This document shows, one piece after another, positions 10,109 through 62,149 of a stretch of DNA of 64,000 bases (position 1 is its first letter; each line of letters begins with the position of its first letter). Source of the DNA: Zygnema circumcarinatum SAG 698-1b (taxonomy: Eukaryota; Plantae; Zygnematophyceae). The notes beneath the pieces were generated by a model that saw nothing but the letters and a program-made list of their open reading frames with translations, was not told where the DNA came from and made no database searches. The translations under genes were made by a program, and so were the position numbers. The stretch covers positions 1,922,001-1,986,000 of the forward strand of contig CM074817.1 of the NCBI GenBank assembly GCA_037447605.1, given 5' to 3'.

Positions 10109-10645
10109 AGGTCTACTTTTTTGTTAAGAAAGAAAATTAGAGATTTGCAGTCTAGATTTGAATGGGGTATTGTTGACGTTAGGGCTCTCGCCAATGAGAG
10201 TACTCGATCATTGTCCAAATCGAGGACATGTGGAATTTAAAATTCGATTCCTTGGAAGGATGGATGGTTTTATGCTGAGAATATGAAAATTGATTCCATA
10301 ATCTGATGGATTATATTGGGCGTGCCTCGTTTGAGCATGAGAGCTGCCTCTCTAACTGAAAAATGAAGTGGAGGTTGTCAGCAGTAGGAAACCTTTTATT
10401 TCAAGTTGTGTGCCGGTACTCACATAAGTGAAGCCCTCCATTCCTCTCACTACAGTAAGGATATGCTCTTGCTTGAAAGGCATCTCGTTCAAGTGAAGTC
10501 TCTGAAGTCTCTGAAGTTGACTCCAGGTGGCATTGCTCAGCATGGGACGGAACCAATATGACGACGACCTCTTATACAGCATCCAACTATCATAAAAACA
10601 ATCAAAGATATCTATCACTGAATCAGATCCCTAGTCAGTAGCTGG

Positions 10646-11480
10646 GAACCATTGGCAACCAATGGCTGCAACAATTGCCAACTGCAGGCTGGGTCTGCCA
10701 ATCAATGGTTGCAACCATTGAAATGGTTGGTGCTCTACGGGCCATGTGGTACACTTCAGTCATGGCATGAAATGCTATGCGGTACCGTACTGCATTTGTA
10801 CTTGGACTGCACAATTCGCTGGTTTATGGTTTTGGGTTTGTACTTTGTGGTTCAAGATTTCGTGGTTTCATGGTTTACGGTACAGTAAACTGGTACATGC
10901 GACTTTATCAACGCCTTGGAGTTTTTAATAGCCAAAACCTCATTACCAATTGAATTCAATCAATTTAATATTGATATAGTTGGTGTTATAGTTATTTCCC
11001 GTTCGATTTGAATCTCTTATTGTAACCGCTCTGACGGCTCTATTGTCTGAATCCTAATTCGCAATACGTAAGTGGACTCTTTAAACGTTTGAAATAATAA
11101 CGAGAAAAGTGCAAATGTTCGACTGGACAAGATTCCAAGCCCCTCAATCTCTCCTGATTCAATACAATTCAATCAGTTTGACAGAGAAATGTTCAAAAGG
11201 GTCAGCTTTACGGTACTGCCCAGGCCGGATCGTTGGATCAACCATTGAAATGTTGCCAACCATTGGTTGGCGGACCCAGCCAGCATTTGGCAATGGTTGC
11301 AACCATTGGTTTACCAATATGGTTTATTTTGTCTTGTTCCCAACCATTGGCAATGGTAAACAACCGCTGGATCCGCTCAATGGATCCAATGCTTGCCAAC
11401 CATTGCCAACCAGTGGTTTGAACCAATGGTTGGCAACGATTGGAAGCCTGGGCAATGGTTGCCAATGTTGAGCCAACGGT
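10646..11480. repeat. Inverted pair of TGGTT-N3-AACCA dyad clusters (10646-10730 versus 11228-11480) flanking ~500 bp; diverged relative of the 31/34 kb arrays
   Basis: The reverse complement of 10646-10730 aligns with ~11238-11320 (caaccatt..aat.ttgc.aaccattg.ttggc.gacccagcc.gca.ttggcaat.gttgca.ccattgg). Confidence 0.75.
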
Positions 11481-12338
11481 CCAATATGCGCTGTTCCATG
11501 CTTCGTGTCCCCTTGTGCAACTGCGGCCGGCGCCGTCCTAGCGCATGGAACGAGCGCCTACCAACGGAGTAGGCCTGCATGGAACGGCCGTACAGCGGCA
11601 TTCGGCGCCGCCGCACGCCTTGACTTTTCCACCGCGCCGTCACCCCAAAGCGGCGATCATCCGTGACGTAATTATGACATCAATATGCAAAACGACGTGT
11701 ACGCGTCGCGACTATTTTGCCACGTGTCTCAAAGTACGGATTTCCCCGTTGTACAAATAGTCGGTGCGGCCAATCAGCGTCCGCCATTTCTGCCGCTCAA
11801 GCCAACGTGGAGGGGCTCGCCCTCAGCACCGACACGAAATGTCGGTGGACATCCTCCACGTCATGGCCCAAAGCTGACCCCGCGGTCGGGTTCTACGGAT
11901 CCCGATTCCATCGCAGTTGATCCAGAAACTCCACCCAGTGGACCCTGGCCGTCCTGCGTGCGATCCACGCGGGCTCGGTTCACGACCTCGAACGGACGAC
12001 GTCGCCATGGCCACTTCGTACGGCACCGACCCCTCCTGGTCTGCCCGTGAAACCTTTTCCCCTCCGGGCAGCGCATCCCTGCGCGCTGATTGGCTCCACC
12101 TGTGACCGCGCGCCGCCTGGCCGCGTCCTCCACGTCCCGCGAGGTCGACTTCAAGGCGGTGCGGCGCGGGAGCGGCGCCAGGGCTCCCCCTCTCTCCCCC
12201 TCCCTCTCCCTCTCCCCCTCCCTCTCCCACTCCCACTCCCTCTCCCACTACCCCTCCCGCCACTCTCACTCACTCCCACTCCCACTCTCCCTCCCCCCCT
12301 CCTCTCCCTCCCTCCCTCCCTCCCTCCCACCTCTCACA

Positions 12339-13889
12339 ATGTGGTACAAGCGCGGCCTCTCCTCCTCTGTGCTGCTCCACCCCACCGACGATGTCAGCGA
12401 GCATTTCCTATTTGGCAAGGAACTAGGAAGTGGGTTTTCCGGAGTCGTCCGTCAGTGCACGGACCGCAGCACGGGCGAGGAGCTCGCCTGCAAGTCCATA
12501 AAGAAGGCGAACCTTGAAGACGAGGACGACTTCGACGATGTCCGCCTCGAGATCGCGGTCATGCGCCGTCTGAACGGGCACGCGGGGGTGGTCGCCCTCC
12601 GGGGGGTGTTTGAGGACCCGGACAGCGTTCACATCATAATGGAGCTTTGCGAGGGAGGGGACCTATTCGATGAAGTGGTAAAGAGAGGGCCTCTCTCAGA
12701 GGTGGGAGCCGCACGTGTGATAGCGCAGATAGCGGAGGCTGTGTCCTGCTGCCATGCAAAGGGAGTGATGCATCGCGACTTGAAGCCGGAGAATATTCTA
12801 CTGTCGCGGCCCTCGGGGCGCGGAGAGGGAGGGGGGAAGAGAGAGGAGCAGGAGAATTTTGTAGTGAAGCTTGCGGATTTTGGGCTGGCAATGTTTTTGG
12901 GTCCCTTCCAGGAAGCCTCTGGGTTTGCAGGGTCCCCTTATTATGTCGCTCCGGAGGTCCTCTCACAGACGTGGTATGGAAGAGAGGCCGACATTTGGTC
13001 TCTGGGAGTTGTGCTCTACGTGATGCTGAGTGGGGAGTTTCCATTTGCTGGAAAGACAGATGCTAAGCTTTACAAAGCGATCAAGAGAGGGCGTCTCACA
13101 TTCTCCCACCCCCCTTGGCCCTCAATTTCTGTGCTGGCCAAGTCCCTGATTCGCTCTATGCTCGCATTGGACCCCCGTTCCCGTCCAACTGCAACGGAAA
13201 TTTTGCAGCATCCATGGATTCAGAGGTTCTGCGACACTCCCTCACAGCGAGTCGGCCTCTCTAATCTTCTCATGCCGAAGTCGGCTGCAGCTTACTTCGC
13301 AGCCAGCTTGGGAGGCTTCCTCGGTAGCTCTCCTCCCTCCTCTCCCGCACATCTCAGCCCCCCTGAAGCGGAGCCTCCCATCACCTCCTCTCACGTCCTC
13401 TCTCTCTCAAAGGCCACCTCTCTCTACGTGGTCAAGGCCTCCAGCATTTCCGTTGCCATGGAACCAGTTGTGCAGCAGGAGGCGTCCGTTCCATGTGCTC
13501 CGTTCCCCGAATCTCACCCCACCATTCTCCCCTCCCTCTCCATGGCCCCCACCATGAACCCCCCCAAAGTGTTATCTGTGCCTAAGGGCCCATTCTCGGC
13601 CTCTGCCGGGGCAGATTCCCCAAAATCAGTACTGGCTTGCGCTGAAGAGGTAAGCGATAGCGACTCGGAGACGGGCGAAGTTGAAAAATCTGGTGATCAA
13701 ATGCCTTCTCCCACAGCAGAGGGAGGCCCTCCCTCTCTCGTGAATGGAGTACTTTCCGCCTGTCTGTGGCGTATTTCCGCCGCCTGTACCTGCTACTCCA
13801 GTGCTCTTTTGGGTCGCTGCCTTTCACGACGTCGCCCGGCAACAGAAGGAATGGCGGGTTCTAACACTGGTGTGAGTGCAGCACTATAG
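12339..13889 (+). CDS. Second intronless PEPKR/CDPK-related kinase, no EF hands; Ser/Pro-rich C-tail
   Basis: [35 protein letters not shown] and DIWSLG. ATG at 12339 (MWYKRG); upstream ORF sequence is a CT-rich tract. Confidence 0.92.
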   Translation: MWYKRGLSSSVLLHPTDDVSEHFLFGKELGSGFSGVVRQCTDRSTGEELACKSIKKANLEDEDDFDDVRLEIAVMRRLNGHAGVVALRGVFEDPDSVHIIMELCEGGDLFDEVVKRGPLSEVGAARVIAQIAEAVSCCHAKGVMHRDLKPENILLSRPSGRGEGGGKREEQENFVVKLADFGLAMFLGPFQEASGFAGSPYYVAPEVLSQTWYGREADIWSLGVVLYVMLSGEFPFAGKTDAKLYKAIKRGRLTFSHPPWPSISVLAKSLIRSMLALDPRSRPTATEILQHPWIQRFCDTPSQRVGLSNLLMPKSAAAYFAASLGGFLGSSPPSSPAHLSPPEAEPPITSSHVLSLSKATSLYVVKASSISVAMEPVVQQEASVPCAPFPESHPTILPSLSMAPTMNPPKVLSVPKGPFSASAGADSPKSVLACAEEVSDSDSETGEVEKSGDQMPSPTAEGGPPSLVNGVLSACLWRISAACTCYSSALLGRCLSRRRPATEGMAGSNTGVSAAL

Positions 13890-19733: not shown

Positions 19734-20230
19734 GGCGGCCTCCAGCGCTCCCCGTCCCCAGCAGGAGCCTTCCGGTTGCTCTCCAACGACAACATCGCAA
19801 TCGTATCGTATAGTTTCCATATCTCGATATATTGTATCGATAACAGGCTAGCCGCCGATCGGCAATACAATTGATATCGTATATCGTATCGTATTATATC
19901 CAAGCGTACTTCGATGTATCCCTCTAAAGTGGAAAGTATCGGTTGGGATATATCTGGCTATATCGTTTGCATACTACTGTAGAAGATGTCGCCATCGAGT
20001 CCTGCCTTGGCCAACACGATAACGGGATTCCCAAACGCTGCAATTCGCTTTCTGTGGACAGCGACGCGTTTGCGGAGGCGGCTTGCCGCGTCCGCGAAGA
20101 TCCAGATCGGACGGCGGAACGCGTTCACGTGCTCGACACTCCACCGTCCGATTCGCGGATCGCGAGCCTTCCGCACCCACGCCAGAACTAGAAATTGCCG
20201 CGATTCCCAAACTCGTCATTCAGCGCCGCA

Positions 20231-21103
20231 ATGGAGAACCCCGCAGCAGCAGCAGCAGCCCCCTCGGGCCCCGCCCCTCCCACCACCGAGCTCGCCGCCC
20301 TCCTCCTCCCCTCCGCGCCATGGATGGGGAAGAGAGGCCACCGCCGCCATGCCCTTCGGGGAAGCTCTGAGCACCCCCACCGCCACCGCGGCCACGGCCA
20401 TGGCCATGGCCACGGCCACGGCCATGGCTATGGTCACAAGCACCACCGAGGCCACGGGGGTGACAAGGAAGTTCATGATGGAGGTCATCCCGGCTTCTTC
20501 AAGGGGCGCCATGGCGGTCACATGCACCGCATGCATGGCATGCATGGTGGAGCATGGCGTCGAGGGCGATCCGTCAGCCCCTCCCCTCTTAACGGAGCGG
20601 AGCTTGACCCAAGCAAGGTGGCTGTGATTCTGGAGGAGGCGGGGAAGGATGGCGAATACCGAAGGCATGGAAAGTATGGAAGAGGCGGCCGCCATGGCGG
20701 TATCCTCGCTGCAGATGTGTGGGAGAAGGAGGACGCGTATGTGGTCGCGGTGGACGCGGCGGGAGTGAAGGAGGAGGACGTACGGACGCACTTCCAGGCG
20801 GGGACGGGGCCGGGAGAAGGCCCGCTCCTGCTGCTCAGCGTCACACGTGCGGGGGAGGCCGATGGCACGTGCAAGCTCGTGCGGCGGGAGCGTCTGGTTG
20901 GTCGGTTTGAGCGCAGGCTGCGGCTGGCGGAGGATGCGGCCGTGGAGGCGGCGGCGACCGCTGTGGGGGGCGGCGTCATCACTGTCACGGTGCCGCGCAG
21001 GGCGAGGGAGAAAGAGGGGGAGGGAGGGGCTCCGCTGGATGTGGCTATGGCGGAGGGAGAGAGAGAGGGAGAGGGAGAGGGAGAGGGAGAGAAGACTGTA
21101 TGA
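20231..21103 (+). CDS. Intronless small heat-shock (alpha-crystallin domain) protein with His/Gly-rich N-terminal arm
   Basis: ADVWEKEDAYVVAVDAAGVKEEDV ... RRERLVGRFERRLRL ... GVITVTVPR matches the ACD pattern. HGHGHGHGHGHGYGHKHH arm. ATG at 20231. Confidence 0.8.
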   Translation: MENPAAAAAAPSGPAPPTTELAALLLPSAPWMGKRGHRRHALRGSSEHPHRHRGHGHGHGHGHGHGYGHKHHRGHGGDKEVHDGGHPGFFKGRHGGHMHRMHGMHGGAWRRGRSVSPSPLNGAELDPSKVAVILEEAGKDGEYRRHGKYGRGGRHGGILAADVWEKEDAYVVAVDAAGVKEEDVRTHFQAGTGPGEGPLLLLSVTRAGEADGTCKLVRRERLVGRFERRLRLAEDAAVEAAATAVGGGVITVTVPRRAREKEGEGGAPLDVAMAEGEREGEGEGEGEKTV

Positions 21104-30969: not shown

Positions 30970-31180
30970 AGGAGATGGGGATCCGCCGACAGGCGAAATG
31001 TGTCGGTGGAAATATCACGCAGATGCCGGATCTCGGGGGATTCCGGACGGGAACTGGAACTGGAACTGAGGGGATGGATGCGCATGGGGCCGGCCAACGG
31101 CAACGTGCTTTCGAATTTCAAATTTGGGTTCACTCGTGGTTTCTAGTTTTTGTAGAGCTTTGAAGTCTAGCACAGTTCGG

Positions 31181-31553
31181 ACCAGTGGATCGGCAACCAT
31201 TGGACAACCATTGGATGGCAATGGTTGGACGTCTACTGGTTGGCAACCAGTCGACTGGTTGCCAACCAGTGGCATCCACTGGTTCCAAACCAGTCGAATG
31301 GTTGTCAACCAGTGGCATCCACTGGTTGGCAACCAGACGAATGGTTGTTTCGGTCCGCAACCACTGGTTGGCAACCAGTCGACTGGTTTGGAACCAGTGG
31401 CATCCACTGGTTGGCAACCATTCGACTGGTTGTGAACCAGTGGCATCCACTGGTTCCGAACCAGTCGAATGGTTGTTTCGATCCGGCGGCACTGGTTGAC
31501 AACCAGTCGAATGGTTATATCCATTTAATCAAATGGTTGGCAACCATTAAATT
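31181..31553. repeat. Array A of palindromic dyads ACTGGTT-N3-AACCAGT (about 12), joined alternately by CG and GGCATCC (43-bp higher-order unit)
   Basis: Units read directly from the sequence. Confidence 0.93.
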
Positions 31554-31585
31554 GTCGGTGTATGGATCTCCGTACAGTCGATATA

Positions 31586-32140
31586 CAGTAGGGGGTCCTC
31601 ATATTTTCCACCCTGGTTCCGGGCAAAATGAGGCGAAAATATTAAATTTGCATATATAAGGTTCGTGTTACGAATAGACGGGCGGTATTATGTTAGAGTT
31701 CATGTTGAACCGTACGTATCGTACCGTACCGTATCGTACCGTATCATTTAGAATCGTATCGTATCGTGATATATCGTGACGCATAAGCGTAGTTTTTAGG
31801 ACTGTTGTTCGTCTCATTGATGATGCCGTACTACGGATAGTACCGTATCGGGAAGTTTCGTATCGTATTGACGATATCGTATCGTATCGTATCGTGTCGA
31901 AGTCAAGAAGACGGGGAGAAGAGCGAGCGCCTCTTACGGCGGCACGAGCGGGGAGATTAGGTGAGTTTTGCGTAAGCCCGTAACGGCTAGTACAGATAGT
32001 ACGGACAGTACGAACAGTACGGTCAGTACGAATAGTACGGCTAACACAAGTTACCGTACAAAAAGGTGGTTTCGGCAAAATCGGGGCGAAAATATTGAGG
32101 ACGCACTCCTTAGGGTCGTAAATACGAGGACCCCCCACTG
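31586..32140 (+). mobile_element. pogo/Tc1-mariner-like MITE copy 1 (555 bp)
   Basis: TA|CAGTAGGGGGTCCTC ... GAGGACCCCCCACTG|TA; internal (CGTAT)n and GTAC repeats. Confidence 0.88.
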
Positions 32141-32188
32141 TATGGGATTTGGTCTACATGTACGGATATACGGTCAGGTGAAATAAAT

Positions 32189-32857
32189 AGTACGCTTATT
32201 GTTTTGGCGGGTAGCACGGGATGCCACCGGTTGGCTGCGCCAATTGGGGCAGCCAATCTAGGACTACCACGTGGCAATTAGGGTTACAGGCCTGCTGGAG
32301 GATGGAGGCAGGAGGGACTGCAAGGAGGCAACGCAGAGGAGGACGAGCTCCCCGGTCTCACCGGGCGGCGGACATGGCCAGCCGAGCAGCCAGCAAGCAA
32401 AGGACGAGGGCCAGGGCGGGAACCAGGGCGGGCGTCGAGGCGAGCGAGGAGCGGCGGACATGGAGGCAAATTATTGGAGCGGTGGGAGTGCGGCCGAATG
32501 AGGAGCTGCGGCTCTCTTTAGGGCTTAGGCATAAATAGTGCTTAGTGCTTTTTTAGGTTTAACCTTCTTCTGCTTTGCTATGTGCAATCAGCCCTTGTGA
32601 AGGCTGGATAGAGGAGGTGGGAGCTTGGGTAGCTCAGGTGTGTTCTTTGGGATTAGAGGGTGTGTTTAGAGGATAGTGTGAGGTTGAGTTCCAGACACAT
32701 TCCTTGTAAACATCCTTATTCTTATTAATGGAGTTTTAGGCTTAGAGCTTTCTCCAAAGTTTTCTCAGCGTATGTTCTACTCCCTTGCATGTTCCTCAGT
32801 CTGAAGTGTCTATAGCGGCAAGTGAGGGGACATCTGCTGGGGGGTCTGACTCTAACA
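32189..32857 (+). mobile_element. Probable solo LTR (669 bp)
   Basis: Flanked by the 5-bp direct repeat TAAAT (32184-88 and 32858-62) and ends in CA. Starts AG rather than TG. Contains an ATAAATAG TATA-like box followed by a T-rich segment. Confidence 0.5.
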
Positions 32858-33980
32858 TAAATCACTAATTGTCAACAGTTGGCAACCCACCAAAAAACAC
32901 ATACGACCCATTTTTGAGCCCCTACATCTCCCTATACGTTTGATTTACAGTAAACTATTAGTTTCCTCTTTTTGAAGTACTCACGGAACCCTAAGCCTGG
33001 CCTGAACCCTAAGCCTAGCCTAAACCCAAAATCTGGACTCCTGCTCCTCCTCGCGATTCTGACTGCTCTCACAAAGCGCACACTCATGCGCTCTACAGCG
33101 ACAAAACAAAACAAAACAAAATAAATTTAGCAGAGCATGTCCATCCACCCAAGAGAAGAAAATGAGCACAAAACACACACACATCGCAGTATTCGCATTT
33201 TCAGATGATCACATACAGTTGAAAAAAATTCATATCAGAAATTTCAGAGTGTGCAGTTTTGCTGAAAATAAAAAGACTGCCAAAAGCAGTGGAAGTTTCA
33301 AAAATAAAATAACGAAGCACTTCAAAATTACGAAGGAACGAATTTACGAATTACATATGAAATGAAGTTACAGCTTCAAGACTGAGCCTTCAACTCCAGC
33401 CCTTAGACTCTACCACACTTTTAAACTCCTAAATGAATACCCCCAACCTTCCTTACCCACCCTCCCTCTCTCTCTCTCTATCCTCTTTTTCTCACTCCAT
33501 CCCTCTCTCTCTCATTCCCTCCCTCCTTCCCTCCTCCAATACTTGCCTGCTTGTTTGCTCGCCTTCTTGCTTGCGTGTCTCCCTCCCTCCTTCCTTTCCT
33601 CCTACCTCCCTGCCTCCGTCCATCAAATTTTTCAATTGTCATCATTCACATAATCCAGATAGTTTCCTCCTACCTCCTTGCCTCCGTCCATCACATTTTT
33701 CAATTGACATCATTCACATAATCCGGATAGTCAGCTGCCTGAGTATCTATGACATCTTCGTCCGCCTCCTCCCTTGCATCATTTTCGATGGGCATCTCAA
33801 TTGAAATTTGCTCTCTTACTTCTTCATCGCTGCCTTCATCTAGCGCACTGACTGCTTCAAACGATTTGCAATCTGATAAGCGTGTAGGCACAAAAGAGTT
33901 GATTTCAACCCATGCCACCGAATGCTGTCAATAAGTGAGAAAGGAAGGGTTCAGGTTAGGAAAAAGAGCATAATTTCAGA

Positions 33981-34391
33981 AATTCAATGGTTGCCAACCA
34001 TTGGATCACTGGTTCCGAACCAGTCGAATGGTTGTTTCAGTCCTGCGCCACTGGTTCGCAACCAGTCGACTGGTTTCCAACCAGTGGATGCCACTGGTTG
34101 GCAACCAGTTGACTGGTTTGGAACCAGTGGATGCCACTGGTTGGCAACCATCCGACTGGTTGCAAACCAGTGGCATCCACTGGTTGGCAACCAGTCGACT
34201 GGTTTGGAACCAGTGGATGCCACTGGTTGGCAACCATTCGACTGGTTGCGAACCAGTGGCATCCACTGGTTGCCAACCAGTCGAATGGTTGTTTCGGTCC
34301 GCAACCACTGGTTGCCAACCAGTCGAATGGTTGTTTCGGTCCGCAACCACTGGTTGCCAACCAGTCGACTGGTTTGTCTAATGGTCCGATC
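33981..34391. repeat. Array B of the same ACTGGTT-N3-AACCAGT dyads (about 15); its ends are inverted relative to array A
   Basis: Units read directly. The outer end ttgtctaatggtccgatc mirrors gatcgg..accattggacaa, and the inner end aattcaatggttgccaaccatt mirrors aatggttggcaaccattaaatt. Confidence 0.93.
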
Positions 34392-34609
34392 TGTTGTCTA
34401 GGGAGTTTGTTATTTACACACCTTTTAGCTAACTTTGTGTGTCCTCACGGCCTATCACCACGCGCCACGTGTACATTCAACATTTGTCGATTCTAGCGCT
34501 CTGTTCAGACCGGGACCAAATCACCTAAGGACCTCGGATATCGGCTAAGGACCAGCGACAGAGGCTGTGGACCGTACCGTGTACAGTACAGTCTTCTCAC
34601 GTTACAGTA

Positions 34610-35252
34610 CAGTAGGGGGTTCTCGTATTTACCGCCCTAAGGAATGCGTCCTCAAGAAATTCGCCCCGATTTTGCCGCAAACCACCTTTTTGTACGGTAA
34701 CTGCGTGTTAGCCGTACGGTTCGTACTAGCCGTACTAGCCGTTACGGGCTTACGCAAAAGTCACCTAATCTCCCCGCACCTCCCGCCGTAAGAGGCTCTC
34801 GCTCTTCTCCCTCTTCTTCGTGCCCTCGATACGATACGATACGATACGATACGATACTTTACGATACTGTGCGACACGGTACGATACGAAACGCCCCGAT
34901 ACGGTACTATCCGTACTAGCCGTATGAGCTGTAGTAGCCGTTACAGTACGATACGGTACGATATGGTACGGTACGATACGAAACGCCCCGATACGGTACT
35001 AGCCGTACGAGCTGAGACGAACAAACAGCGGAAAACTACGTCTATGCGTTACGATATGGCACGATACGATACGACGCTAAACGATACCGTACGATACGGT
35101 ACGATATGGTGCGATACGATACGTACGGTCCAACATGAACTCTAACATAATACCGCCCGTCTATTGGTAACACGAACCTTATATATGCAAAATCAATATT
35201 TTCGCCTCATATTGGCCAAAACCAGGGTGGAAAATATGAGGACCCCCTACTG
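34610..35252 (-). mobile_element. pogo/Tc1-like MITE copy 2 (643 bp), opposite orientation to copy 1
   Basis: TA|CAGTAGGGGGTTCTC ... GAGGACCCCCTACTG|TA; interior is the reverse complement of 31586-32140. Confidence 0.88.
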
Positions 35253-35339: not shown

Positions 35340-36391
35340 GGAAAATGATACAGCGGCCCCACTCTTTGGATATCGGCGCCCCCTTTTGGGAAAAAAATGT
35401 ACTTTTTTTTTGGCTAATCACTCCCCCCCTTGGATCTTTCGGGAGGAGAGATCTTGTAGACAATCGGACCCCGCGCCTCGCGCGCCGGATCCGACTGTGC
35501 ACCGACGTACGGCGCCGCGCATCGCGGCGTGGCCAGCGAGATGCGGCGAGCCTACGGAAACGTTGTCCTCACCTGACCCGTTTGGGTCAGAGGTTGCCAC
35601 GTGACAGCCTGCCATTGGACAGCCCTGCTGCCGGTCCCCCATGCCGATACCGTGGACCCCCATAATATTTTCGCCATGGTTTCGGCAAATACTGGGCGAA
35701 AATATTGTAATTTGCAAATATAAGGTCCGTGCTACCAATAGGCGAGCGGTATTATGTTAGAGTTCATGTCTGTTCGTACGTATCGTATCGTGTCGTATCG
35801 TACCGTGATTTAGATACACGAGCTCCTATTGGTGCCGTACATATACCGTACGACTTAGAGATTTTATTCGTACTTACCGTACAGCGTGAAAGCGTGACCC
35901 ATGTTTGAAATCCGTTTCGATTAACAGATTTTGAATTGGAGAATAGGTCAGGTTAGGTTAACACCCCTAATACGTTAACATTGAGTTACCGTACAAAAAG
36001 GTGGTTTCGGCAAAATCGGGGCGAATTTCTTGGGGACGCACTGTACAAGGTGGAAAATATGGGGGTCCACTGTATCGGCAATTCGGCATGGGGGACCGGC
36101 AGCAGGGCTGTTCAATGGCAGACTGCCACGTGGCAACCTCTGACCCAAACGGGTCAGGTGAGGACAACGTTTCCGTAGGCTCGCCGCATCCCGCGGGCCA
36201 CGCCGCGATGCGCGGCTCCGTACGTCGGTGCACGGTCGGATCCTGCGCGCGAGGCGCGGGATCCGATTGTCTACAAGATCTCTCCTCCCGAAAGATCCAA
36301 GTGGGGGGGGGGTTGATTAGCCAAAAAAAAAAACATTTTTCCCAAAAGGGGGTGCCGATATCCAAAAAGTGGGGCCGCTATATCATTTTCC
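35340..36391 (+). mobile_element. Foldback/Mutator-like non-autonomous element copy 1 (1052 bp, ~310-bp TIRs)
   Basis: Ends GGAAAATGATA...TATCATTTTCC; 8-bp TSD TAATGTTA (35332-39 and 36392-99); arms 35340-35649 and 36073-36391. Confidence 0.88.
35650..36072 (+). mobile_element. pogo/Tc1-like MITE copy 3, nested at the symmetry axis of the foldback element
   Basis: TA|CCGTGGACCCCC ... GGGGGTCCACTG|TA; shares GCGGTATTATGTTAGAGTTCATG and TTACCGTACAAAAAGGTGGTTTCGGCAAAATCGGGGCGAA with copies 1 and 2. Confidence 0.85.
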
Positions 36392-36667
36392 TAATGTTAT
36401 TACAGATGTTTTTGCGGTATATCCGTACACCTTTGATCCCGTACTGTACAGTACATTGTACTTTTTGGGCAGTCGTCTCGTGGGTACTGTACAGGTCTAC
36501 GAACCCTGGTGAGCATGTGTACGGTCAAGTTGATATGTACGGTCACGTCGATATCTGACGGTATTTGTCGATATATGTACGGTCGTAATATATTTCTAAC
36601 TTATATCCGATGCGTGGGTGGATAATATCGACATTTTGAATATATAGTAACAATTAGGGCTTTTCAA

Positions 36668-37720
36668 GGAAAATGATACAGGCGCCCCACTTTTTGGAAA
36701 TCCGCGCCCCCTTTCGGGAAAAAACTGTACTTTCATTTTGGCTAATCACGCCCTCCCCTTGGATCTTTCGGGAGGAGAGATCTTGTAGACAATCGGACCC
36801 CGCGCCTCGCGCGCAAGATCCGACTGTGCACCGACGTACGGCACCGCGCATCGCGGCGTGGCCCGCGAGATGCGGCGAGCCTACGGAAACGTTGTCCTCA
36901 CCTGATCCTTTTTGGGTCGAGGTTGCTACGTGGCAATCTACCATTGGACAGCCCTGCTGCCGGTCCCCCATGCCGATACAGTGGACCCCCATAATATTTT
37001 CCACCTTGTACAGTGCGTCCTCAAGAAATTCGCCCCGATTTTCCGAAACCACCTTTTTGTACGGTAACTCAATGTTTACGTATTAGGGGTGTTAACCTTA
37101 CCTGACCTATTCTCCAATACAAAATCTGTTAATCGAAACGGATTTCAAACATGGGTCACGCTTTTACGCTGTACGGTAAGTACGAATAGAATATCTAAAT
37201 CGTACGGTATAGGTACGGTACCAATAGGAGCTCGTGCATCTAAAGCACGGTACGATACGATATGATACGATACGATACGTACGGATGTACATGAACTCTA
37301 ACATAATACCGCTCGCCTATTGGTAGCACGGACCTTATATTTGCAAATTACAATATTTTGGCCCAGTATTTGCTGAAACCATGGCGAAAATATTATGGGG
37401 GTCCACTGTATCGGCATGGGGGACCGGCAGCAGGGCTGTCCAATGGTAGATTGCCACGTAGCAACCTCTGACCCAAAAAGAGTCAGGTGAGGACAACGTT
37501 TCCGTAGGCTCGCCGCATCTCGCGGGCCACGCCGCGATGCGCGGCGCCGTACGTCGGTGCACGGTCGGATCCTGCGCGCGAGGCGCGGGGTCCGATTGTC
37601 TACAAGATCTCTGCTCCCGAAAGATCCAAGGGGGGGGCGTGATTAGCCAACATGAAAGTACAGTTTTTTCCCGAAAGGGGGCGCGGATATCCAAAAAGTG
37701 GGGCGCTTGTATCATTTTCC
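36668..37720 (-). mobile_element. Foldback/Mutator-like element copy 2 (1053 bp), inverted relative to copy 1
   Basis: Same GGAAAATGATA termini; 7-bp TSD TTTTCAA (36661-67 and 37721-27). Confidence 0.88.
36979..37408 (-). mobile_element. pogo/Tc1-like MITE copy 4, nested at the same axial TA
   Basis: TA|CAGTGGACCCCC ... GGGGGTCCACTG|TA. Confidence 0.85.
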
Positions 37721-51712: not shown

Positions 51713-51885
51713 CCTAAAACCCGAACCCCGAAACCCTAATGCATACAAATTTTAACTTCTAAACGCTAGAAATACCTTTAAACCCTAAACCCTGACCCCT
51801 AACCCTTATCCCCCAAACCCTAAACCCTAAAATCTTAACCCTAACCCCTCCCCCCTAACCATAAACCATAAACCCTAAACCCTGC
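51713..51885. repeat. Degenerate plant-type telomeric (CCCTAAA)n interstitial tract
   Basis: aaaccctaaaccctgacccctaacccttatcccccaaaccctaaaccctaaaatcttaaccctaacc... Confidence 0.8.
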
Positions 51886-60050: not shown

Positions 60051-62149
60051 CTATCCCTGCTTCTGCTTTTCCGACCATCCTGTAAGATCGTCCACGCTGA
60101 ATTCATAGGTCTCTTCTGAGCCTGTCCGCACCTCAACGCCCTGACTCGCAAGAAAGGTCTCCACACTTCCAGGCTCCCCAAACCAGCCCAGCCTGTCTGC
60201 TATGAGGTGCATGTTCTGGCAACCAGAGCAGCGCACTATGACGACCCCTGTTTGGTAAGTCGACCGACTCATAGTCTTCGCAGACCGCGTCTCACAGACC
60301 GAGCAAGTGAACAGGATGGCCAAGTCATGGCGGCTCGACTGTCTGGGGGTCACTTCGGCACTCGCTTCTTCAGGCTGAGAGATGCTGGTGATGGTCCCTT
60401 CTTGCTCATCTATGTTCGCCGGTTTTAAACCATTGCCCTGTGGATGGTTTTCAGCTCCTGCTGTGTCTGAGGCAGACTCAAACACGTCCTGCTGTCTGGA
60501 TAACTCATGCTGTTGTTTAGTTGAATCGTGAAGAGCAGCACAGCTACAGAGGTTTGCATATCGAACAAAGGTTCGGTCTGTATGCGCAAAAGATGTCCTG
60601 GGATCATGTGTTGACTGTTCCCTATGGCCGAATGTTGAAAAGGGAACACTTCTAAAAGGCACAAACTGCGGATAATAAGCTTGATCGTAGGCTTGTGGTA
60701 ACGTGGTATGAGGAATAGACGTGGAGAATTGTTTTTCCAAGTCTTGATTTGTAACTGGGAAGACAGCCTCGTGGAAAGGAAAGGGCGAACGGCTAGACTG
60801 TAAACCTGCATCCAGGGAAACAAATACGAATTACTAAATGTAGGGTTGCTTTCTCGAGACTCTTGCAATGAGAGAGCCATTTTGAACACGAAAAGTTACT
60901 CAGCACACAAGCTTCTTCCACACACTGAGGTGCAGCTTATCCACATATAAGCTCCAATATCAGATAACACCAGATAACAATGCCAAGACATGACAAAATG
61001 ACAAATGACAAGACTGAACGACCCATTGGAAACGACATCGAGATCACAAGCAAATGGCATCTGTGGGAAGTCATGATATGGTAACAAGGGTCAACTTCAT
61101 CAGCCATATCACTCCCTTCCATTACGGAACGGCCTTCGCTGCTGCAAAGTGCACCGTCTGTAGGGTGTGCGTGAATCAGGCTCACACTTCTACTGCTTTG
61201 TATTGCAATACAGGATGACCCTCAGTCTATCTCCGCATCATCAATAAAGTCTGGGAACAAGGATATCAAGCTAAAAAACGAGAACTTACTGAAAATCTTG
61301 AATGGAAACACCTAAGCTTATAGAGACAACCTTCTCTGAGATTTTCGCATTACGAGTCCTAAACCTTTTTGGGGATGTGGTTTTGTAGAGCCGTGCTCGA
61401 CACCCAACTAATTGTTGGAGGAAAGACACCCTATTGGTCAATTTCGATTTGAATTAGAAACAAAAAATTGACATGCTGGAGAGAACTGCAAAGCAAAGAT
61501 AAGTTAAAGACAGCTTGGTTCTTAGCCCAAATCTTTCTTGACCTATAAATCTAATCGGAAAGAAAACTAGATAAGAACTATATAATGAGCATAATGATTC
61601 GAATTTTGAACAACTCTCAATTGAGAGCAACAGAAGTTTTCACTCAATCCACAAGAAGCACTCATATTATATCTCACGCTACGGTGTGTCTGCCCTATCC
61701 ACGAATTTTCCAATTGCGAGAAATCAACGCTCACACTGATGTAAACTTGAAGGAGTTCTTTAAGATGGAACGCTTATTTTTCCTACAAGTGGTGAAACTA
61801 GGGTTAGGGTTGGGAGTAAGGGGGGAGTGGAGAGGAGGTATAAAAGGGGACGGGTTCATCATTTATCTCTACAGGTTCAACGTTGCGAAGGTGCAGAAAC
61901 CCATTCTGTACTGTTGATTACCTTGAACTCCCTTTACGCTACAAGCGACTACTTTTCAAGCACAGCACATCGTTTCTGTAAGCCCACCCAGCATGCCATA
62001 GAAATTTGTGTTCCTCAAAAGTTCAAACTCGTCCCAGACATACTTTCCAGGAAGATATACATACCACCCCTTTGCAAATCGTATCCTCTAAAGCGTGCTC
62101 TTGAGAGAGATGCGAGCAAAAGAAGTCCGTTGCTTATCCGAGAAGCCAT
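60051..62149 (-). CDS. DNL-type zinc finger Hsp70-escort protein (Zim17/Hep1-like), likely mitochondrial
   Basis: FTCSVCETRS..YQTGVVIVRCSGCQNMHLIADRLGWFG. Tentative exon 1 (62149-62065, MASRISNGLLLLASLSRARFRG) splices in phase to the acceptor at 60805; an extra exon cannot be excluded. Confidence 0.85.

Follow-up and report, generated by a model that had tools for sequence, protein, structure and literature searches.

A 64,000-nucleotide stretch of the genome of the streptophyte alga Zygnema circumcarinatum SAG 698-1b (assembly GCA_037447605.1, contig CM074817.1, positions 1,922,001 to 1,986,000 of the forward strand), here called the window, carries two arrays of a 17-bp dyad, ACTGGTT-N3-AACCAGT. 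Both arrays are inside one 3,225-bp unit, 31171-34395 in window coordinates, which has short terminal inverted repeats (TIRs) at its ends and the same hexamer on either side. Our reading, which we hold to be probable, is that the arrays are the subterminal repeat domains of a single non-autonomous, foldback-like, cut-and-paste DNA transposon in the genome of this alga. That the sequence is mobile DNA is drawn from the TIR and flanking repeat, the non-coding middle, the self-folding arms, and a second related structure in the window. An earlier interpretation made from the letters by themselves, the sequence-only reading, had likewise proposed a foldback-type mobile element; that proposal stands insofar as the TIR and flanking repeat bracket both arrays around a non-coding middle, but the arms are not inverted mirror copies of one another.

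The dyad arrays and the unit that carries them

The features that define the unit are, from left to right:

31165-31170: left flanking direct repeat GTCTAG, a candidate 6-bp target-site duplication (provisional)
31171-31183, + strand: left TIR, which begins CACAG and agrees with the reverse complement of 34383-34395 at 11/13 positions
31184-31234, + strand: left outer domain, in which the variant motif CAACCATTGG / CCAATGGTTG is present three times (by direct reading)
31235-31548: array A, 12 dyads in about seven units of 43 or 42 bp
31235-31362 and 31363-31490: blocks A1 and A2, the two 128-bp higher-order blocks of array A, which also has a decayed inner part
33986-34374: array B, 15 dyads
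34050-34178: block B1 of array B, inverted relative to A1
34179-34306: block B2 of array B, which, like the later units, is direct relative to A2
34383-34395, - strand: right TIR, whose reverse complement begins AACAG
34396-34401: right flanking direct repeat GTCTAG, identical to the left hexamer

Dyads were found by searching the window with the pattern ACTGGTT-N3-AACCAGT, and the chance level was taken from dinucleotide-preserving shuffles. At up to one mismatch there were 24 matches, compared with an average of 0.02 in the shuffles, and all 24 were confined to 31235-31507 and 34008-34365. Allowing up to three mismatches brought the dyad counts to 12 (array A) and 15 (array B), in agreement with the roughly 27 dyads (about 12 and about 15) counted in the sequence-only reading. 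The 43-bp period that it had described, with CG and 7-bp linkers in alternation, was recovered by Tandem Repeats Finder in both arrays, along with higher-order periods of 85/86 bp and 128/129 bp, and the linkers themselves read as expected: the order in the regular unit (n = 9) is dyad, CG, dyad, and GG-CAT-CC or GG-ATG-CC. Six more units belong to a conserved 42-bp variant that has, in place of the second dyad, a degenerate module starting AATGGTT-GTT-TCGGTCC. The CG linker is kept in 15/16 cases, the remaining one being TG.

The two arms of the unit, 0.3-0.4 kb each, are therefore made from one word of 7-8 bp that alternates in orientation, with gaps of 3, 2, 3 and 7 nt. The centre-to-centre steps between half-sites are 10, 9, 10 and 14 bp, which by arithmetic comes to about four helical turns per 43-bp unit, and with such spacing the half-sites would lie roughly on one face of the helix. 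Three palindromes are nested in this arrangement (ACTGGTT-N3-AACCAGT, AACCAGT-CG-ACTGGTT, and AACCAGTGG-N3-CCACTGGTT), and to choose any one of them from the sequence as the "operator" is arbitrary.

The limits of the unit are set by its termini. When the 13-bp terminus was searched at up to two mismatches, the 64 kb contained no match beyond these two sites, and an 11/13 TIR together with a 6-bp flanking repeat appeared in 1/3000 shuffles of the 120 bases flanking each array. Provisionally, 31171-34395 is one insertion with a 6-bp target duplication. A 5-bp duplication, TCTAG, is an alternative (left end CACAG, right end CTGTTG) that needs a one-base indel in the TIR. Duplications of 8 bp and 3 bp were considered and rejected, the former because it is out of register with the termini, so that a deletion would have to be supposed, and the latter because it fails at them.

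Arms, half-sites and palindrome centres

The best local alignment of the two arms is 85.9% identical over 284 positions in direct orientation and 79.7% identical over 316 in inverted orientation. Blocks A1, A2, and B2 are 86-91% identical in pairwise comparisons in direct orientation, and B1 resembles A1 when inverted, at 85% over 122 positions in one alignment and 92% over 113 in another; the six degenerate modules have the same orientation in both arms. The arms combine direct with inverted blocks in a mosaic, the pattern expected when sequence can pass between palindromic arrays whichever way they face, and the true TIRs are the 13-bp ends only. The statement that the array ends mirror each other consequently applies to the 13-bp outer repeat (11/13) and to the palindromic inner dyad, but not to the arms overall.

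Both arms have a strong tendency to fold. As single-stranded DNA, the arm at 31171-31560 reaches -143 kcal/mol (z = -19.3 relative to shuffles) and the arm at 33975-34395 reaches -164 kcal/mol (z = -19.0), and because the units are palindromic, the arms are still able to pair with one another despite their mosaic orientation. The term "foldback arms" is loosely right: the arms are repeat filled and self-folding, but they are composed of blocks in both orientations.

The direct-orientation identity of A1, A2, and B2, together with the ability of each array to fold on itself, would also suit a history in which the arrays, similarly oriented and 2.4 kb apart, are two separate small palindrome-built elements or arose when one array was duplicated locally. 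We consider this history very unlikely, since the inner edges of the arrays (~31550-31585 and ~33960-33985), on reading, have neither terminus-like sequence nor a flanking repeat, and a terminus pair with a flanking repeat is present at the outer edges alone.

Substitutions within the arrays are distributed very unevenly. Among the 14 half-site positions of each of the 27 dyads there are 10 mismatches in 378 cells, and among the spacer positions there are 20 in 81, each spacer being scored against the nearer of GGC and GCC (Fisher p = 7e-10), although the dyads in this comparison were chosen through their half-sites. A check free of that bias is provided by the paralogous blocks 31363-31516 and 34179-34332, which align directly and without gaps over 154 bp and differ at 12 positions; 0/12 of these differences fall on the 98 half-site positions (P = 5e-6 under even spread). 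No indel was found in any dyad spacer. The earlier description of nearly invariant half-sites flanking spacers that vary in sequence at fixed length was thus confirmed, and its list of 12 spacer variants was reproduced exactly. Half-sites no more conserved than spacers, one of the outcomes that the sequence-only reading had named as evidence against itself, were looked for and not found, the contrast being strong.

All of the variation is located at the odd-length centres of the three nested palindromes. G or C occupies 72/81 spacer positions (89%) in a window of ~48% G+C. From the list of spacers, 19/27 have the form GNC or CCG, which makes these dyads 8-N1-8 palindromes; the first dyad of the unit is almost always of this kind, and the second dyad holds most of the spacer variety. 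The centre of the 7-nt linker varies by exact inversion alone (CAT or ATG), and four pairs of spacers are mutually reverse-complementary. Blocks A2 and B2 have a variant half-site in common, at the same position.

Two further ideas about the origin and identity of the word were set aside. In a model of fold-back doubling, with each level an exact inverted copy, partner spacers should be reverse complements, which is the case in the first unit (GGC/GCC) alone. The MYB cores and the RFX X-box do not seem to match the word.

That a dimeric protein reads the dyads is plausible, and the exact inversions of the linker centre would fit hairpin-driven change as well as they fit a protein. The latter observation leads to an explanation based on structure, not on recognition by a protein: the arrays would represent a palindromic minisatellite that forms hairpins or cruciforms, with or without a transposon as its carrier. 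Slippage, unequal exchange, and gene conversion in two orientations would keep its stems uniform, while the exposed 3-nt centres would mutate or invert. Such a mechanism agrees with the position of every variable site at the centre of one of the three palindromes, with the occurrence of blocks in both orientations, and with the very strong folding of both arms (z ~ -19). The CAT/ATG inversion and the reverse-complementary spacer pairs favour some hairpin contribution, and loop flip-flop between short inverted repeats is known in plastid DNA (PMC6342102). However, structure needs complementarity and not a fixed word; no compensated stem variants occur, and 5/7 of the departing dyads break complementarity. 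The even-length CG centre is constant (15/16) even though it too is unpaired in a hairpin, and the TIR and flanking duplication are left unexplained. We regard the structural explanation as rather unlikely, with the qualification that it is compatible with the transposon reading and that both can hold. An ordinary minisatellite, which would lack termini and decay evenly, does not agree with the TIR and flanking repeat or with the limitation of the variation to palindrome centres.

Interior of the element and related sequences

Between the two arrays the unit contains the following features:

31586-32140: nested miniature inverted-repeat transposable element (MITE) of another family, whose ends begin CAGTAGGGGG, with TA on both sides
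32143-33985: middle domain, non-coding and unique in the window except for low complexity
32253-32271: endoplasmic reticulum stress response element (ERSE)-like box CCAAT-N9-CCACG, in the middle domain, overlapping the G-box-like CCACGTGGC
33595-33731: 68-bp tandem duplication, in the middle domain

The sequence-only reading had considered that the pair of arrays might enclose a transposase. No coding domain was found: ten open reading frames (ORFs) of 54-123 amino acids in the middle domain, where ORFs of at least 54 amino acids were scanned, had no match above threshold in Pfam. The ORF that runs through an array (159-amino-acid translation) was submitted to a word-based protein search, in which 984 candidates were scored and none was significant, and a scan of the window with Rfam matched no family.

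The nested MITE is a copy of an element at 34610-35252, which lies ~200 bp downstream of the unit in the opposite orientation. Both CAGTAGGGGG-ended copies contain short repeats of the CGTAT/CGATA type, and related pieces are found at ~35665-37393. Since one copy is nested in the unit, the element at 31171-34395 is older than the MITE insertion. ERSE-like boxes occur six times in the window (32253, 36929, 37440, 47923, 47956, and 48979), compared with ~0.12 predicted by simple base odds.

Another palindrome-rich structure, in a decayed state, is present at 10636-11480. Its building word is CAACCATTGG / CCAATGGTTG, in which the half-site takes the variant form AACCATT; the complementarity of its arms, 10657-10729 and 11239-11311, is 85%, and distances of 43 and 41 nt from start to start are seen repeatedly. 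At its left end it is similar to the right end of the 31171-34395 element, and the left outer domain of that element, 31184-31234, is similar to 11396-11418 (91% over 23 nt). A scan of 10480-11640 for a TIR and target-site duplication gave matches inside the structure's own repeats only, which define no termini or duplication.

Beyond the window, the exact double dyad with a CG linker had 0 matches in metagenome contigs, and the double dyad had 0 matches in prokaryotic genomes and 0 in viral contigs. With a linker of 2-7 nt, two metagenome contigs were matched (L001:2740-2825 and L002:2441-2480); both are A+T-rich, with AAT or ATT spacers, other linkers, and unrelated context, and their palindromes are probably small tandem palindromes independent of the algal element. 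The L001 site is within a region rich in GACCGGTC-like words, which resembles a transposon end.

The distribution of the word bears on whether the arrays could instead serve the host in regulation or architecture, as a landing pad on which a dimeric DNA-binding protein sits (an insulator, a silencer, or an origin-like site), with no role in transposition. An invariant word at fixed spacing, with the four or so helical turns per 43-bp unit obtained by arithmetic and the phasing that they would imply, is what such a site might look like. However, the dyad is found nowhere else in the 64 kb, and outside the arrays the half-site occurs 8 times, with 8.8 occurrences expected for the whole window; this lack of enrichment argues against a general host operator. 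The TIR, the flanking repeat, the nested MITE, and surroundings rich in transposable elements point instead to mobile DNA, and the double dyad is missing from the prokaryotic genomes and viral contigs, its only matches being in the two unrelated A+T-rich metagenome contigs. A landing pad is, in our estimation, highly improbable.

Elsewhere in the window, ten large ORFs were compared with Pfam, and matches were obtained to two protein kinases, Hsp20, and a DNL zinc finger, with no transposase among them. Two long single-exon ORFs, 246-1979 and 12090-13886, encode complete protein-kinase domains; the Hsp20-domain ORF spans 20195-21100, and the one for the DNL zinc finger spans 60054-60740 on the minus strand. 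At 51779-51883 there is an interstitial telomere-like tract, in which TAAACCC (the telomere repeat of plants, read on the reverse strand) is present about 15 times.

Affinities and proposed mechanism

The target duplication measures 9 bp in FB and 7 bp in Galileo, and elements of the hAT and CACTA groups have TIRs of 10-25 bp with many short subterminal motifs for transposase binding, in both orientations and no more than a few hundred bp from the ends, such as the hexamers of Ac/Ds and the 12-bp motifs of En/Spm. Foldback elements have long TIRs with internal tandem repeats around a non-coding middle, and the duplications of Tetris are 8-10 bp (PMC4079207). In Galileo, DNase footprinting and electrophoretic mobility shift assays placed the sites of the THAP domain in the tandem repeats of the long TIRs, and its authors proposed that many short sites provide specificity and allow a higher-order synaptic complex to form (PMC3688188). 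The duplication of hAT elements is typically 8 bp, with 5, 6, and 7 bp in the subgroups hAT5, hAT6, and hAT7, of which hAT6 was placed in an animal lineage; CACTA elements have a 3-bp duplication and CAC..GTG ends, and 6-bp duplications are reported for hAT6 and for IS3EU, the ends of which are TAYGG..CCRTA (PMC12730594).

The element at 31171-34395 is like the members of the foldback group (Drosophila FB, Tetris, and Galileo and the plant elements FARE and SoFT) in having repeat-filled arms beside short termini, a non-coding middle, which varies in content within the group, and a candidate flanking duplication; the group also includes non-autonomous copies. Arms of tandem subrepeats, which are typical of that group, are present here as 43- and 42-bp units with higher-order periods of 86 and 128 bp. 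Unlike the foldback group, its arms are ~25% of the element, their orientation is mosaic, and their repeat unit is a hierarchy of palindromes. The short TIR and the two-way subterminal words are shared with hAT and CACTA elements, although the 43-bp palindromic period is far more ordered than anything in those groups.

None of the superfamilies compared accommodates the termini and duplication fully. The P superfamily, including Galileo, has a THAP-domain transposase and a duplication of 7-8 bp and Mutator-type foldback elements a duplication of 8-10 bp, and neither matches the 6 bp read here. Among hAT elements, 6 bp fits the hAT6-type exception alone; autonomous hAT copies encode a transposase with a BED finger, a DDE domain, and a dimerisation domain, and no transposase was found in the element or among the ten large ORFs scanned elsewhere in the window. 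The left end here is CACAG and the right end CTGTT; for Transib, which has CAC..GTG ends and a 5-bp duplication, the 5-bp reading needs the TIR indel, and for CACTA, the 3-bp reading fails. IS3EU fits in the length of its duplication, but the ends CACAG/CTGTT and the 13-bp TIR differ from TAYGG..CCRTA and TIRs of >30 bp.

Several of these observations weigh against the transposon reading that we prefer. The arms resemble each other more closely in direct orientation than when one is inverted, and the element is therefore not a classic foldback; its 6-bp duplication is at variance with the 7-10 bp of typical foldback, Mutator, and P elements. One clean copy was examined, in a 64-kb window in which no autonomous copy and no transposase were found, and a search within the window for an empty site corresponding to the joined flanks found none. 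The seven bases just beyond the right terminus, TCCCTAG as the reverse complement, recur beside the left end of the 10636-11480 structure, and CTAG may be a preferred target or a part of the terminus. Spacers that are 89% G+C are not free to drift. Finally, because dead copies drift evenly after insertion, the contrast between half-sites and spacers must stem from the master lineage or from a mutational bias.

If the transposon reading is correct, the half-sites would be many sites at which a transposase, encoded elsewhere, attaches through its DNA-binding domain. By analogy with Galileo, many short sites together might confer specificity and help to pair the two ends. In an active (master) lineage, selection may have kept the half-sites and their spacing while the unpaired palindrome centres changed, and part of that change may have been hairpin-mediated inversion, accompanied by exchange between the arms in either orientation. 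These two processes would account both for the CAT/ATG and GGC/GCC flips and for the mixed orientation of the blocks. The 31171-34395 copy would be young enough that its half-sites have hardly decayed (2.6%).

A more ambitious version of this proposal combines several elements: a transposase new to foldback elements, possibly of a superfamily undescribed in the green lineage (given the 6- or 5-bp duplication and CACAG ends), with a dimeric domain that reads dozens of in-phase 8-bp half-sites at fixed spacing, and palindrome centres diversified by inversion and mutation specific to hairpin loops in nuclear DNA. We think it unlikely that all of these hold jointly, but if they do, the arrays preserve a natural trace of cruciforms or hairpins extruded in vivo.

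The element is a known kind of mobile DNA in an unusually orderly architecture and not a new class of system. It is a very regular example of a non-autonomous transposon that stacks short putative binding words at its ends. Half-sites that substitutions avoid, next to centres that flip, offer a natural test of selection for protein binding against hairpin-driven change, and the promoter-like CCAAT-N9-CCACG box within the element adds to the evidence for mobile DNA spreading promoter modules in this alga.

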